Sequence record: NC_070950.1
Direction: 5' to 3' (one strand)
DNA length: 64,000 nucleotides
Part shown: positions 8,750-53,741 of the stretch, one piece after another
Numbering within the stretch: the first letter of the stretch is position 1
How the letters are laid out: every line of letters begins with the position of its first letter
Notes under the pieces: generated by a model
What the model was told of the DNA's origin: nothing
The model's input: the letters and a program-made list of their open reading frames with translations, nothing else
Databases searched by the model: none
Made by a program: the position numbers and the translations under genes

Positions 8750-10249
8750 ATGATCAAGCAATCTTCCGTTTTCATTGCGTTGCCTATCGCAGAAAGTTTG
8801 GTTGGTGTTAACAAAACCTTTGCTGATAAAAGCCATCCGCTCATCAAAGGCCTAAGCGAATGCAGCTATGGATTGGTTCCCTATACCCTCGATAACCTTC
8901 CTTTGACTTTACCGGAAGTTACTCACGAGGAAATGGAACACGGTTTGCTGCTGGATGAAGCCAGTACAACACTCGCTGAATCTGTTCGTAAGAGTTTCCA
9001 GCAAATCAGCCATTACCTCAAACCTTTCGCGAAAAATCTCATCGAAGAAATTTACAAGGCGACAGATATTGATGAAGACGCTACACGTCAGATTTTTGAC
9101 CGTCTTCAGATTGAATACCGTAAGCTCGATTACAGCTTCTTCGATAGCCCGTTTTACCCGAAAGAGATTGACGGCTCTATCGACTACAGCAAGATCCCTC
9201 TGAAAGATCTGATGTTGCCGGATAACGCAGTTGATAAAGACTTCGGCGGGTTCGCCGATTATATCCAGGCGCCTAACGCAGAGATCAAAGAGATCTTTGA
9301 AGCTTATCAGCCGGGTTGGGCGTTCGATAAATTTATTGGGAACAACAACTGGGCCGACGTCTTCAATATTTTCAACGGTAATGTTGATCTGACAACGGCC
9401 GGTTACAAAGACCCGGCACCTCTGTTCAGTCTGTACGTGCTGTTTACGAAAATGAAAGCGGATGAAAATCCGGCTCCATTCGTAAAAAATATCGAACTCC
9501 ATCAGTATCGTGGTTACGTCAACCGGATGCATAACTTCCTGACCGTAGCGCTTGTTTTTTGTTCTCGCTACTATCAGGGTTTGAAACTCACTCCAATGCC
9601 TGTTTTATCTTTGGTGGGCAAAATGGAAATGGATCGTGGGATTAACCTCCTGCGCGGTAAAATCGTCGTAGGTCTTACCAAAAAAGGTCTTGATCTTTAC
9701 GCAGCGGCGGCACCTGAAGGTTCTGTGAGTGAAGCTCTGGCCGGTAAGGCAGTGGCCATGATCGCAACCAAGTCCGATAAAGCTGGTTTGAACATCGTTG
9801 CAGGCGCAGAGTACTTCCAGGAAGTATTCCGCAATTACCTGGCTGGCGTAACGGGATCTCTGAACGCTAAGATCACTGAATCCTGTCGGGACGCAGTTGA
9901 GAATGCGCTGATCAAGTTCCAGAACGAACACGCGGAACTCAAAGATACCGTGATGGGTCTCAATGACAAAATTGAATTCCGTCGTCTGAGCCACGCTCTG
10001 CAGTCTGACGTGGATGCGTTCGTTGGTGGTTATAAATCGCAAGTTGTCGCTAACGGCGTTCCGCTGGATAAATACGTCATGGGTTCTGATCTCGTTGCCT
10101 CTCTGGGTAACCTGATGGGTATGACGTTCGCGGCGGATGTACTGCGCACCAGTGCTCGCTTGATCGGTTCAGGTGAGATCACCGATGTTCAGAAACGCGA
10201 AGCGCTGACCGAAGCGGTTGTAAAATCTTTAGTTAAACATCTTGTCTAA
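8750..10249 (+). CDS. Conserved phiKZ-like hypothetical protein, probably virion-associated
   Basis: 499 aa, high-expression codon bias, in the protease operon. Confidence 0.55.
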   Translation: MIKQSSVFIALPIAESLVGVNKTFADKSHPLIKGLSECSYGLVPYTLDNLPLTLPEVTHEEMEHGLLLDEASTTLAESVRKSFQQISHYLKPFAKNLIEEIYKATDIDEDATRQIFDRLQIEYRKLDYSFFDSPFYPKEIDGSIDYSKIPLKDLMLPDNAVDKDFGGFADYIQAPNAEIKEIFEAYQPGWAFDKFIGNNNWADVFNIFNGNVDLTTAGYKDPAPLFSLYVLFTKMKADENPAPFVKNIELHQYRGYVNRMHNFLTVALVFCSRYYQGLKLTPMPVLSLVGKMEMDRGINLLRGKIVVGLTKKGLDLYAAAAPEGSVSEALAGKAVAMIATKSDKAGLNIVAGAEYFQEVFRNYLAGVTGSLNAKITESCRDAVENALIKFQNEHAELKDTVMGLNDKIEFRRLSHALQSDVDAFVGGYKSQVVANGVPLDKYVMGSDLVASLGNLMGMTFAADVLRTSARLIGSGEITDVQKREALTEAVVKSLVKHLV

Positions 10250-13531: not shown

Positions 13532-13632
13532 TATTTTATGGTAGGGGTGCTTTAGGCACTCCTACTGGACTCATCGTGCATTTTAATTCAACACACAAAA
13601 AGAATGAGACCTGTACTATTTAAGTAAGAACA

Positions 13633-14334
13633 ATGATAGGAGTTGCTTTCATGGATTCAATAAGCTGGTACGGAAAATTTAAAGCAGTAACCGAGGATTT
13701 GATTCCGGTTGATCTTTTACGGTACTGCTTATGGTCGATCACCTTTAATGACAAAGCGCATGATTTGAATCACGTTTATCATGTTTGTAAACAAGGGAAC
13801 GATCTTGCATTATTACAAGATTACGATGACCACTGGCGAAGCCTAGTATTGGCGGGTTGTCTGCTTCACGACATTGGGTGTCGTTACGATCGTAAAACCC
13901 ATCATCTCATAGCGTATGGGTTGGTCTTCGACTTAACCCATCGTTATTGCACTGGACACTATTCGCCGGAAGAGACATTGATCATTGCGAAAAGTTGTCT
14001 GGAGCACAGAGCAAGCTGGGAAGGTGATTTCAGTCATCCTATTTCAGAAACGGTTGCTCTGGCCGACAGAGGTATTCCTGATTTCGAGTTATACTGCAAA
14101 CGAGCCGTTCAGTTCAGGTTAGATCAAAACCTGACTGAAGATGTTTTGGTAGAAGAAGTTCGCGTTCACATGTTAGACAAGTTCCTACCTAAGACGGGAT
14201 ACGTTTGGAAAAACTATCCTGAATTAGGATTGTCTTTATATGAACAAGAATGGAAAGTGTTCCACGATAAACTTAAAGACGAAGTTGTCTTTAGAGAGGC
14301 TGTACTAGAAGCGTACCGTAAATTAAAATCTTAA
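13633..14334 (+). CDS. HD-domain metal-dependent phosphohydrolase
   Basis: H...H (HDLNHV), LLHDIG, EHRAS and LADRG motifs. Confidence 0.8.
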   Translation: MIGVAFMDSISWYGKFKAVTEDLIPVDLLRYCLWSITFNDKAHDLNHVYHVCKQGNDLALLQDYDDHWRSLVLAGCLLHDIGCRYDRKTHHLIAYGLVFDLTHRYCTGHYSPEETLIIAKSCLEHRASWEGDFSHPISETVALADRGIPDFELYCKRAVQFRLDQNLTEDVLVEEVRVHMLDKFLPKTGYVWKNYPELGLSLYEQEWKVFHDKLKDEVVFREAVLEAYRKLKS

Positions 14335-14391: not shown

Positions 14392-14886
14392 ATGATTATT
14401 TTACTTGCTGTTTTTGCTATTATCCTTTGTATTGGTTTTTGTTATAAAAAGATCAATATCAAAAACGACATCGGAATCAAGGTTAACAACGCCACAAAGA
14501 TGGTTATCGACATCAACCTTGGTAAAATTAAAGGGGAGTTCAAGATCGTTAAACACAGTCGGTGTTTCAAACCCAGGGTCTCTCCTGGATTAAACGGATT
14601 GGTTTACACCGTTCCTGTGTTTTGTACGTTATCTGAATTCATCACCGGCTTATATTCTGAAGAAATAAGACCTTACGACAAACAAAAAGATAAACACCTC
14701 TTAGACGTCGTCAGAGCCATCGTAGGGGTCGAATTAAAGGACGATGGTATGATTGCCTTATTCGACGACACGACCCTTTGTGAGACCGTAGAGAGAGCCA
14801 GAGAGTCATTTGTGATGAATAAGGATTATTTCTTCTCCGAGAAGGGGTGGAACCGAGGCAATGTTATTGCACCTATCAACCTTTAA
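14392..14886 (+). CDS. Hypothetical protein with N-terminal membrane anchor
   Basis: MIILLAVFAIILCIGFCYKK start; SD GAGG. Confidence 0.7.
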   Translation: MIILLAVFAIILCIGFCYKKINIKNDIGIKVNNATKMVIDINLGKIKGEFKIVKHSRCFKPRVSPGLNGLVYTVPVFCTLSEFITGLYSEEIRPYDKQKDKHLLDVVRAIVGVELKDDGMIALFDDTTLCETVERARESFVMNKDYFFSEKGWNRGNVIAPINL

Positions 14887-14900
14887 TTAAGGATTTTAAA

Positions 14901-15041
14901 ATGTCTGACATGTTTGACGTGGATCAACTCAACAACCTGAACCTGGAAGCGGTTGAAGAGAAAGTCGAATCTCTTCGTGATGGTGGCGGTGAAGTTGTCG
15001 AGGCTTCCGATGAATGTGAAGGCGGCGCCTGCAAAATTTAA
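14901..15041 (+). CDS. 46-aa acidic peptide ending DECEGGACKI (NrdA C-terminal-tail-like)
   Basis: ATG 14901 after AAGGA; the C-terminus resembles the E. coli NrdA tail DGCESGACKI. Confidence 0.75.
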   Translation: MSDMFDVDQLNNLNLEAVEEKVESLRDGGGEVVEASDECEGGACKI

Positions 15042-15050
15042 AACGCATAA

Positions 15051-15104
15051 TAACTCCTACTCCCCATACGGGGAGTAGGAGTTAGCAGTACTTATTTTTT
15101 TTTT
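15051..15104. terminator. Bidirectional terminator between convergent genes
   Basis: TAACTCCTACTCCCC-ATAC-GGGGAGTAGGAGTTA plus a T run. Confidence 0.85.
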
Positions 15105-15105
15105 C

Positions 15106-16002
15106 TTACAGCATGTATTCAGGAGCGGTAACTTTAGCCGCTTCACGAGTCATCGCAGCAAGAGTACCAGAATCAGTAAGACTCTGGAGAATCGCCGTAG
15201 GCTGCAGGAATCCGGATTCGGCACCGCGACCAGCTGGGTTATACATCGGGAGTTTGCTCAGGAAAGAACGAGCAATCTCTTTAGCGGCCTGGGTATCGAA
15301 ATCGATCAGACCGGTGTATTCCATGTTGATGTCACGCATCTGACCAGCTTCGTCTTTGTTACGACGCATCTGGATTTCAACGGTGTTACGCGGCATGATA
15401 CCTACTGCAAGAGCAGCATGGGCAACATCACGCATATTACGCGTCGGTTCCAGATAAATGTTCGCACAAGAGATTTGGTCGATCAGGAGATCGCCTGGAT
15501 CATCGAGGATAACTGCACGAGGATGGCCCAGATCCGGATCGTTCAAACCATACAGAGACCAGGAACGATGGAGGTTAGTATAAACCTCACCTTCGATATC
15601 CACGCCAGCATGGTTGATAACACCGAGGGTACGAGTACCGCCCGACGGTACGGAGAATACACGGCCAGAGAAACGCTGTTCTGCGAATTCGGTCTCGATA
15701 CGTTCAGAGAGACCGGTGATTTCACGACTACGCGTTTCAAACCAGGATTTCGCCAGTGAGTGGAGGATGTTACCTGCCGGCATACGGCTAAACAACGCAG
15801 GGGTGCTGATACAGAAGCACCAGGTCTGCTGTTGAATATGCGGATGCTCGGAGACCATGTTGGCGATATTGGGAGCCCAGCCATACTGGCCCCCTTGAGG
15901 GCCATTCAGAACAGGACGGTCGCCCACGCCGAACGCAGAGTACCATTCAGAACTCCCAGGTACCAGCGTGCTTGTGTTCCTAAACGGAGTGTTGCTTGAC
16001 AT
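15106..16002 (-). CDS. Tail tube protein (phiKZ gp30-like)
   Basis: 298 aa directly downstream of the sheath gene; strong codon bias. Confidence 0.75.
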   Translation of the reverse strand: MSSNTPFRNTSTLVPGSSEWYSAFGVGDRPVLNGPQGGQYGWAPNIANMVSEHPHIQQQTWCFCISTPALFSRMPAGNILHSLAKSWFETRSREITGLSERIETEFAEQRFSGRVFSVPSGGTRTLGVINHAGVDIEGEVYTNLHRSWSLYGLNDPDLGHPRAVILDDPGDLLIDQISCANIYLEPTRNMRDVAHAALAVGIMPRNTVEIQMRRNKDEAGQMRDINMEYTGLIDFDTQAAKEIARSFLSKLPMYNPAGRGAESGFLQPTAILQSLTDSGTLAAMTREAAKVTAPEYML

Positions 16003-52456: not shown

Positions 52457-53741
52457 TTGACATGCAGATAATTATACATCGATATTATTTAGTCGGAGGA
52501 ATTAAATATGTTTATTTCTAAACGAGGTAAGCTCCGACTACATAAAGATGATTTAGAAACAATCGAAAGAACTTTTGGTTGTCGGAGGTTTGTATGGAAT
52601 CAGCTTTTAGGATTTCATAAAAATCAGTATGAAAAATGGAAAGAAGATTGTACTTTAGAGAAACCTAAAGTTTCTATTTCGGCTTTTAGAGAGGAATTTA
52701 AACGTCTTAAATTAACACACCCTTGGTTAAATGAAGTAAGCTCTATCGTTTTATATGAGACTATTACCGATCTTTATAATGCTTTTCAGGGTTTCTTTAA
52801 GAGCGGTAAAGGTTATCCTAAATTTAAATCTAAACGAGGGATGCAATCTTTTCGAATAGCTTCTCGATACAACATGCGTGTTTCAGGTAATCGAGTTAGG
52901 ATACCTAAGTCGAATTACTACGCTAAGTTCTCTAAAAATACGGTTTTAAACGATCCTTCGTCATATACGGTCACTCGTGACAACGTAGGAGATTATTTCA
53001 TCTCTTTTGTAGACCAGATCGACGAGATCGAACAAGAGCCTGAAAGTAAAGGTAAGCACGTTGGTATTGATTTAGGGATTAAATCTTTAGCGATTATCAA
53101 CTCTAATAAAGGGGAGTCTTGGGAGTTAGAAAATCCCAAAACCTACGTCAAGTACCAAAAAAGGAGAACGACGCTACAACGTCGTTTAATGAAAAAGAAG
53201 AAAGGGAGTAACAATCGTAACAAAGCCAAAATTAAATTAGCAAAGTTAGAACGTAAAGTATCTAATATCCGTAAAGATCTTTTACACAAATTTACCACTA
53301 AGATTATTCGTGAAAACCAAACCATAGTTTTAGAGGATTTAAACGTAAAAGGAATGGTTAAAAATCATAAACTGGCTAAACATATTCAAGATTGTTCTTT
53401 TGGTACGATTAGAACAATGTTAGAATATAAAGCTAAGCGTTATACCAAACCAAAAGTGATTTGTCTTGTTCATCGTTTTTATCCCAGTACTCAACTCTGT
53501 TCTCATTGTGGCATGAAAAGTGAAGTGAAAATCAAACTTCATATAAGAGAATGGACCTGTGGTCACTGTGGGGTTAAACACGATAGAGATATCAATGCAG
53601 CTACGAATATCCTTAACGAAGGATGTCGTTTAACAGCCTCCTAGGTTAAGGGTATTTAATTACCCCTACCCTTGGTCTGAGGGGACGTTAAGCCTGTGGA
53701 GCCGGGTTGCAGTTAGGACCCCCTATGAAACAGGAAATTGA
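52455..53741 (+). mobile_element. Solo tnpB element (IS200/IS605-type, no transposase in window)
   Basis: tnpB plus downstream scaffold-like sequence, bracketed by AATTGA at 52455-52460 and 53736-53741; boundaries are inferred. Confidence 0.5.
52508..53644 (+). CDS. tnpB: RNA-guided endonuclease TnpB
   Basis: N-terminal HTH (FGCRRFVWN); RuvC residues GIDLG, EDL and DRDINAA all intact; zinc ribbon CSHCG..CGHCG; SD GGAGG. Confidence 0.92.
   Translation: MFISKRGKLRLHKDDLETIERTFGCRRFVWNQLLGFHKNQYEKWKEDCTLEKPKVSISAFREEFKRLKLTHPWLNEVSSIVLYETITDLYNAFQGFFKSGKGYPKFKSKRGMQSFRIASRYNMRVSGNRVRIPKSNYYAKFSKNTVLNDPSSYTVTRDNVGDYFISFVDQIDEIEQEPESKGKHVGIDLGIKSLAIINSNKGESWELENPKTYVKYQKRRTTLQRRLMKKKKGSNNRNKAKIKLAKLERKVSNIRKDLLHKFTTKIIRENQTIVLEDLNVKGMVKNHKLAKHIQDCSFGTIRTMLEYKAKRYTKPKVICLVHRFYPSTQLCSHCGMKSEVKIKLHIREWTCGHCGVKHDRDINAATNILNEGCRLTAS

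Follow-up and report, generated by a model that had tools for sequence, protein, structure and literature searches.

The gp244 locus of Klebsiella phage Miami

The DNA analysed, a stretch of 64,000 nucleotides called the window below, spans positions 186001-250000 of the record of Klebsiella phage Miami (MT701590.1 / NC_070950.1; 253,383 bp; genus Miamivirus), record position 199600 being window position 13600. The 2.5 kb surrounding gp244 agree with this record at 100% identity. Annotated genes for a nuclear shell protein, the PhuZ tubulin and multisubunit RNA polymerases identify Miami as a nucleus-forming jumbo phage. Scans of the window for tRNA genes and for Rfam families gave neither.

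The product of gp244 is a short polypeptide with 13 acidic and 3 basic residues that terminates in DECEGGACKI. Its start codon (ATG at 14901) and stop codon (TAA at 15039-15041) were read directly from the sequence; the other features of the locus are given in Table 1. The initial annotation had described an acidic peptide of this length and end, with its own Shine-Dalgarno sequence and a terminator behind it, and each of these elements is present. The hairpin lying between gp244 and the convergent tail tube gene folds with -28.9 kcal/mol (z = -7.45) and is likely a two-way terminator. A simple terminator scan made no call at this hairpin because the T-run is displaced, starting about 7 nt beyond the stem.

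Table 1. Features of the gp244 locus and of two distant genes of Miami, in window coordinates
Feature	Position	Strand	Remarks
Upstream gene	13633-14334	+	Weak match to HD-domain phosphohydrolases (Pfam E = 0.005, under the family cut-off)
Upstream gene	14392-14886	+	164-aa phrog_35362 protein; N-terminus looks hydrophobic
Shine-Dalgarno-like AGGA	14890-14893	+	7 nt before ATG; ribosome_binding_site annotated in NC_070950.1
gp244 (YP_010667423.1), 46-aa microprotein, phrog_10239	14901-15041 (including stop)	+	Annotated hypothetical protein
gp244 residues 1-25, variable acidic N-terminal half	14901-14975	+	D-F-D...L...A-V-E-x-K-V-E pattern from homologue alignments; helix predicted in homologues
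gp244 residues 26-46, RDGGGEVVEASDECEGGACKI	14976-15038	+	Homologue of the flexible redox tail of the class Ia RNR alpha subunit
Cys39 codon of gp244	15015-15017	+	
Cys44 codon of gp244	15030-15032	+	
15-bp GC-rich hairpin between gp244 and gp245	15051-15084	none	Terminator annotated in the record
T-run after the hairpin	about 15091-15104		
gp245, tail tube gene, convergent to gp244	15106-16002		Pfam Phage_TTP_14
Unannotated ORF, 328 aa	49842-50828	+	In a 1.4-kb RefSeq annotation gap between gp282 and gp283; HNH_3 and NUMOD1 domains
gp287, annotated transposase	52508-53644	+	Matches OrfB_IS605, Cas12f1-like TNB domain and HTH_OrfB_IS605

The two upstream genes of Table 1 do not accompany the peptide gene in other phages. 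Far downstream, the domains of the unannotated ORF identify a gene of the homing-endonuclease type, and no group I intron was found near it or elsewhere in the window. The annotated transposase gp287 is a TnpB-type gene within the genome of a nucleus-forming phage. Record OR529409.1, assigned to Stenotrophomonas phage BUCTxx100, is 98% identical to Miami across the 2.5 kb queried, and the host label of one of the two, Stenotrophomonas or Klebsiella, looks odd.

The gp244 family and the redox tail of NrdA

The carboxyl terminus of gp244 resembles that of NrdA, the alpha subunit of class Ia ribonucleotide reductase (RNR). The E. coli protein used for comparison (761 aa; L022:710-2995) was reached from the dihydrofolate reductase of Miami through the C-terminal piece of nrdA in the T4-like phage Whisky and then nrdA in an E. 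coli RefSeq genome. It terminates in DGCESGACKI (longer end ...YYQNTRDGAEDAQDDLVPSIQDDGCESGACKI) and is identical to gp244 at 8 of the last ten residues and 7 of the last eight; the 8/10 figure of the initial annotation thus holds against the retrieved protein. The complete Miami genome contains 3,938 stop-to-stop frames with 30 codons or more; a single one of them scores 8/10 at its C-terminus against the NrdA decapeptide and the runner-up scores 4/10, so the match is beyond chance.

The likeness is real and longer than first noted, spanning the entire flexible tail of NrdA with its RDG anchor, acidic linker, EVVE and terminal C-x4-C-K-I. The structured core of NrdA proteins closes with ...NTRDG, to be followed by an acidic disordered linker and then by the cysteine pair, an arrangement that occupies about residues 735-761 of the E. 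coli protein with Cys754 and Cys759. The RDG, EVVE, DE-x-C and GGACKI-stop elements are common to the peptide core and to the NrdA tails of phage PH357 (...NTRDGANDSQGDEVVEVEDESCSGGACKI) and Colwellia phage 9A (...NTRDGASEGIEEEDESCGGGACKI). Peptides of the Alexandra-type Erwinia and Dickeya phages, which terminate in ...RDGGGEVVD(D/E)KDADGCESGACKI, reach 10/10 identity with residues 752-761 of E. coli NrdA, and one of them is 56% identical to residues 735-761. The identity over the last ten residues therefore ranges from 8/10 to 10/10, and both the peptide and the NrdA tail are predicted to be disordered. The nrdA of Whisky (L021:10177-12419), whose protein ends in ...NVRDGADGTEDASECSSCKL, has one break in its annotation, perhaps a frameshift or an error in sequencing, that splits it into overlapping ORFs of 511 and 236 aa; the second of these is called hypothetical, and this C-terminal piece was compared as annotated, unjoined.

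A profile built from eight diverse members of the family and searched against all PDB sequences aligned E. coli NrdA end to end at residues 751-761, with E-values (0.55-0.9) that are weak because the aligned segment is short. The single gp244 sequence found nothing relevant in the PDB, and neither Pfam nor NCBIfam holds a family for it. The peptide aligns with the last 11 residues of NrdA only and, unlike NrdA, has no catalytic alpha/beta barrel with active-site cysteines, no ATP cone and no body of any kind. It also differs from NrdA tails by its own N-terminal acidic helix and GGGEVVE segment, and by being free-standing or fused to unrelated domains in phages that have no NrdA. As in NrdA, the cysteine pair would sit on a flexible tail at the extreme C-terminus, C-x4-C-K-I being followed by the stop. 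AlphaFold2 (AF2) models of fused homologues depict the module as a short helix (pLDDT 54-70 or 51-55, depending on the fused domain, type B or type A, described below) followed by a disordered tail with pLDDT below 50. The shared elements are best read as common descent of the peptide core from the 3' end of an nrdA gene, not as convergence. A blastn search with the 3' 81 nt of gp244 had no match in 5,426 E. coli genomes; nothing thus points to a recent origin by capture of an E. coli-like nrdA.

Two other identities were rejected. A redoxin of thioredoxin fold (Trx, Grx or NrdH) does not fit a product that has no Pfam or NCBIfam match, a C-x4-C instead of a C-x-x-C motif and a tail predicted to be disordered. 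A mimic of the C-terminal tail of NrdB in the N-terminal half of the peptide was dismissed since that half has no likeness to the end of E. coli NrdB and the family profile found no NrdB chain in the PDB at E up to 10.

The family already exists in the PHROGs v4 database as phrog_10239, which matches gp244 at profile positions 6-47 of 47 (E = 2e-4); the entry gives neither a function nor a link to RNR. The peptide gave tblastn matches in 86 phage records, from phages whose hosts include Klebsiella, Raoultella, Erwinia, Dickeya, Serratia, Salmonella and Yersinia. Among the 60 matches listed, all lie under small CDSs, nearly all of which are annotated as hypothetical proteins. Four of the 86 records belong to Colwellia and Pseudoalteromonas phages and are probably true NrdA tails, because these phage genera encode a full NrdA with a closely similar tail. 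A second query added FBKp24-like, KpLz-like and PhiEaH1-like phages to the carriers. At least 72 clusters, 41-94 aa in length, are present in protein databases, many of them on contigs of 200-300 kb, and carriers of the family are almost exclusively jumbo phages. The isolated ones infect Enterobacterales, with the exception of the Stenotrophomonas-labelled records. Across 185,579 species-representative bacterial and archaeal genomes the free peptide occurs on 3 MAG contigs only, while the bare cysteine motif matches at least 599 stretches, presumably nrdA ends. An IMG/VR scan returned 10 loci, apparently mostly from isolates that are already sequenced.

All 72 of 72 homologues end in C-x(2-4)-C-x-[IL], mostly C[ED][GS]G[AG]CKI, with both cysteines in every one, and this motif falls within the pattern of gamma-proteobacterial NrdA. 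It is preceded by GGGE[VI][VL]E[AP]S[DN] and, further upstream, by an acidic helix-like motif. Residues M1, E23, E31, C39, G42, C44 and I46 are invariant in the alignment of the eight diverse members. Over the last 20 codons, pS exceeds pN in the comparison of Miami with SA002 (0.99 vs 0.14), with PCH45 (0.70 vs 0.23) and with pEa_SNUABM_7 (0.37 vs 0.00); across lineages the tail codons have pN of 0.00-0.33 and pS of 0.29-0.99, the out-of-register Alexandra pairs being left out of these ranges. Such an excess of pS over pN means that the sequence is maintained as protein by purifying selection, and gp244 is a genuine, selected microprotein gene. Its last 66 nt (14976-15041) have 92% DNA identity with the Erwinia Snuvirus phages (L002:6001-6066) and all the differences are synonymous; the rest of the 2.5-kb Miami query is unmatched in those phages. 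This suggests that the small gene may have been exchanged fairly recently between lineages, or that an extra constraint acts on it at the nucleotide level.

Gene context, reductase genes and fusions in the carrier phages

Homologues of gp239-gp243, gp245 and gp247 are absent from the vicinity of the peptide gene in 13 other phage loci, and its annotated surroundings differ among pEa_SNUABM_7, PCH45, phiR1-37 and FBKp24. A conserved neighbourhood was rejected on these grounds: no neighbour in Miami is common to other carriers, and the upstream genes of Miami and SNUABM_7 are alike in size by coincidence only. The peptide gene moves as a single unit. Its variable neighbourhood argues against a RiPP-like operon and yields no guilt-by-association clue; a role as RiPP precursor peptide was discarded also because no conserved maturation genes adjoin the peptide gene. 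Metagenomic contigs as long as 325 kb (581 kb on record) carry the 47-aa member P0046 (L023-L026, gene at 10001-10144). Its gene starts directly after a MYG1/UPF0160 gene and has RND efflux pump genes, an acetyltransferase gene and a nucleoside deoxyribosyltransferase gene nearby; seven of its neighbours were tested and had no PHROG match.

The initial annotation had held that variable cysteines or a silent gene would speak against its interpretation. The cysteines are conserved throughout, and near-silence is seen in one relative. This is g117 of phiR1-37, the most divergent homologue among those examined, for which the supplement to PMC4848604 gives RNA-seq values of 3.91, 1.51 and 1.16, the adjacent g118 having 34,486, 27,327 and 22,550. 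The almost complete lack of g117 transcripts keeps alive the notion that the peptide is a decaying, functionless remnant of an old nrdA 3' end with little or no expression. A core homologous to a gene end and a tiny ORF, always annotated as hypothetical, would be in line with this notion, which we nevertheless consider very improbable: the tail codons evolve under the constraint described above, diverse phages show no variation at the cysteines, one glycine and the terminal residue, and the gene has its own ribosome-binding site, is found in varied genomic contexts in unrelated jumbo-phage lineages and occurs also in stable fusions.

The absence of an RNR gene from the window, reported in the initial annotation, extends to the whole Miami genome. 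None is annotated among its 300 CDSs, and tblastn of E. coli NrdA and NrdB against the complete sequence matched the peptide itself and nothing else. The complete genome of PCH45 has no NrdA and codes for an NrdB with 80% full-length identity to that of E. coli (L032:24783-25889), with 13.6 kb between nrdB and the peptide gene. PCH45 thus already depends on the host alpha subunit. Neither NrdA nor NrdB is found in the complete genome of pEa_SNUABM_7, so that a partner NrdB beside the peptide is absent from this phage as from Miami. The absence of NrdA rests on these three complete carrier genomes, which are of different lineages, RNR classes II and III being excluded by annotation only. The part of the published gene table of phiR1-37 that was accessible (PMC4848604) lists no phage reductase either. 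The NrdA-bearing Erwinia jumbo phages (pEa_SNUABM_12, 47, 50 and their relatives) are not among the peptide matches listed.

These genomes bear directly on a split RNR, one of the readings of the initial annotation, in which the peptide would supply its tail in trans to a tailless phage NrdA. It follows from the NrdA likeness alone, and an NrdA devoid of the C-terminal cysteines was to be sought elsewhere in the phage genome. Miami has no NrdA homologue, with or without cysteines, and the split enzyme is refuted for the lineages of Miami, PCH45 and pEa_SNUABM_7. The only matches suspected to come from NrdA-bearing phages, those of Colwellia and Pseudoalteromonas, belong to genera whose full NrdA has a tail of its own. 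For the family as a whole a split RNR is barely tenable; the tail likeness on which the initial annotation was built stands, and this use of it does not.

Miami retains downstream enzymes of nucleotide metabolism, namely dihydrofolate reductase, thymidylate synthase, thymidine kinase and thymidylate kinase, together with MazG. A crude screen of its ATG-started ORFs of 65-200 aa for CxxC gave seven, and the two annotated ones, which were checked, had no thioredoxin-fold match.

When 1.84 billion representative proteins were searched with a profile, the 44-aa module appeared in full also at the C-terminal end of longer proteins, which fall into two unrelated kinds. The domain fused in type A is about 200 aa long, with a mutual identity of only about 30%, and that of type B is about 105 aa long, with a mutual identity of 25-47%. 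Type B and the module form one CDS of 163 aa in Salmonella phage SA002, and type B is a separate gene directly upstream of the module gene in Erwinia phage pEa_SNUABM_37, to judge from the consecutive locus tags _00102 and _00103. Pfam, PHROG and NCBIfam assign no function to either type, and no PDB fold matched, at E ≤ 0.001, either the AF2 model of type B (core pLDDT about 90) or that of type A (mean pLDDT 64). One JGI label, 'YciI', given to a fused domain was not reproduced.

The fusions suggest a different client for the module. It could have retained the NrdA-derived chemistry as a portable dithiol arm, or as a tail that binds metal or a partner, in the service of phage proteins, for example those of types A and B, its NrdA likeness reflecting ancestry only. 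Capping of two unrelated conserved domains by the same 44-aa module, with type B fused in one phage and adjacent in another, would accord with such a role. The GGGEVVE segment and the N-terminal helix, which are more strongly conserved than in NrdA tails and are not features of these tails, likewise hint at a partner other than NrdA. However, alignments of the type A and type B domains contain no conserved cysteine that the module could reduce, and homologues of these domains were not found in the DNA examined of Miami, PCH45 and SNUABM_7, where the peptide stands without them. A cysteine motif within the gamma-proteobacterial NrdA pattern, in phages whose isolated members infect Enterobacterales bar the Stenotrophomonas-labelled records, also fits poorly with mere ancestry. 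We regard another client as doubtful.

Candidate roles on the host ribonucleotide reductase

We tentatively favour the view that gp244, a detached homologue of the NrdA tail, acts in trans as a shuttle that supports or re-routes host dNTP synthesis. Host NrdA with its thioredoxin/glutaredoxin relay is the most economical target to propose for a mimic of this tail, and host proteins are the likely partners because the carrier phages have no NrdA. Thioredoxins reduce the cysteines of the alpha tail, which in turn restore the active-site pair to its reduced state, and nucleotides contend with the disordered tail for the pocket of the active site (PMC11903788). According to PMC10897161, which cites NMR structure 1QFN, Grx1 and a free peptide with the tail of E. 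coli RNR become linked in a specific mixed disulfide, so that a detached tail can be specifically recognised by a host redoxin. That peptide is a laboratory construct of the enzyme's own residues, whereas gp244 is the product of a natural, separate viral gene with extra conserved segments, and its binding is putative.

The Cys39/Cys44 pair of gp244 would be reduced by host thioredoxin or glutaredoxin in the manner of the native tail. The reduced peptide would then enter the active-site pocket of NrdA and exchange with the catalytic disulfide, as a diffusible copy of the tail that acts in trans and helps or redirects host dNTP synthesis. The beneficiary would be a phage that codes for downstream dNTP enzymes and has no reductase. 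The native tail is tethered to NrdA and hence present at high local concentration. To matter, a free peptide would have to be very abundant or have a place to dock. Docking probably falls to the acidic helix and the GGGEVVE segment, which are kept beyond what an NrdA tail needs. Several observations count against this shuttle: the module is fused to two unrelated domains of no matched fold, the gene neighbourhood offers no functional link, the NrdA sequence scores are weak when taken alone (PDB E about 0.6-0.9), the helix and GGGEVVE, foreign to NrdA tails, hint at a different partner, and g117 of phiR1-37 is nearly silent in RNA-seq.

The main rival to the shuttle is a competitive inhibitor or decoy. 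The free tail would fill the NrdA pocket or the tail-docking surface, or soak up reduced thioredoxin or glutaredoxin, and regeneration of the host RNR would be slowed, which could serve host shut-off or the exclusion of competing phages. It draws on the same tail mimicry as the shuttle and on the contest of alpha tail and nucleotides for the pocket (PMC11903788), and the additional conserved helix and GGGEVVE would suit tight docking. Small disordered proteins that block regeneration via the R1 C-terminus have a precedent in Sml1; Zhang et al. are said to have reported in 2007 that yeast Sml1 interferes with the R1 C-terminal tail. Regulators of the Sml1 type resemble gp244 in being small and disordered, and their effect on the large subunit runs via the role of its C-terminal tail, but they have no sequence relation to gp244 and are eukaryotic inhibitors without a copied cysteine pair. 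An inhibitor appears unlikely because carriers without an RNR of their own would starve themselves, because PCH45 brings an NrdB that is workable only with host NrdA, and because the presence of both cysteines in every homologue suits a turnover substrate better than a trap. The last two points are also those that make us prefer a supportive shuttle. The booster of host RNR and the thioredoxin/glutaredoxin decoy, both put forward in the initial annotation, still stand, as the sequence alone does not separate them; each binding and redox step, and the direction of the effect on the host enzyme, support or inhibition, are inferred.

On an evolutionary scale, it is conceivable, and we put it forward with some reserve, that jumbo phages dropped the large subunit of RNR and kept its 21-residue tail as a diffusible microprotein which commandeers the re-reduction half-cycle of the host class Ia enzyme, in some cases alongside a host-like but orphan beta subunit, as PCH45 has it, and works as a shuttle or as an Sml1-like brake. 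Other parts of the RNR relay or holoenzyme that are encoded apart or fused differently are whole folded domains or subunits with known activity, whereas the gp244 family keeps only the disordered tail. The peptide would thus be a natural free-standing RNR alpha tail, the tail module of NrdA itself being already known. A full-text literature search found no description of this peptide, and its likeness to NrdA suggests that the phage acts in a previously undescribed way on the supply of DNA building blocks of its host.

Re-reduction through the C-terminal tail is a central and poorly visualised half of the RNR catalytic cycle. If the proposed role is true, this half-cycle can be served or blocked in trans, reductase-less viruses have a new route to steer the dNTP supply of their host, and RNR researchers gain a ready-made probe for tail docking and redoxin recognition. 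The family, so far annotated only as hypothetical, would also show clearly how the disordered end of an enzyme gene can give rise to a microprotein that then spreads over unrelated jumbo-phage lineages.

As a separate observation, host-like NrdB proteins 73-76% identical to that of PCH45 are encoded by further jumbo phages, pEt-SU, AH04, Ea35-70, RAY, Kc263 and OBP among them. The nrdB of Ea35-70 (L035:5001-6134) has no NrdA gene within 5 kb on either side, and all of these phages are absent among the best 60 NrdA matches. Carrying NrdB without NrdA seems to be common.
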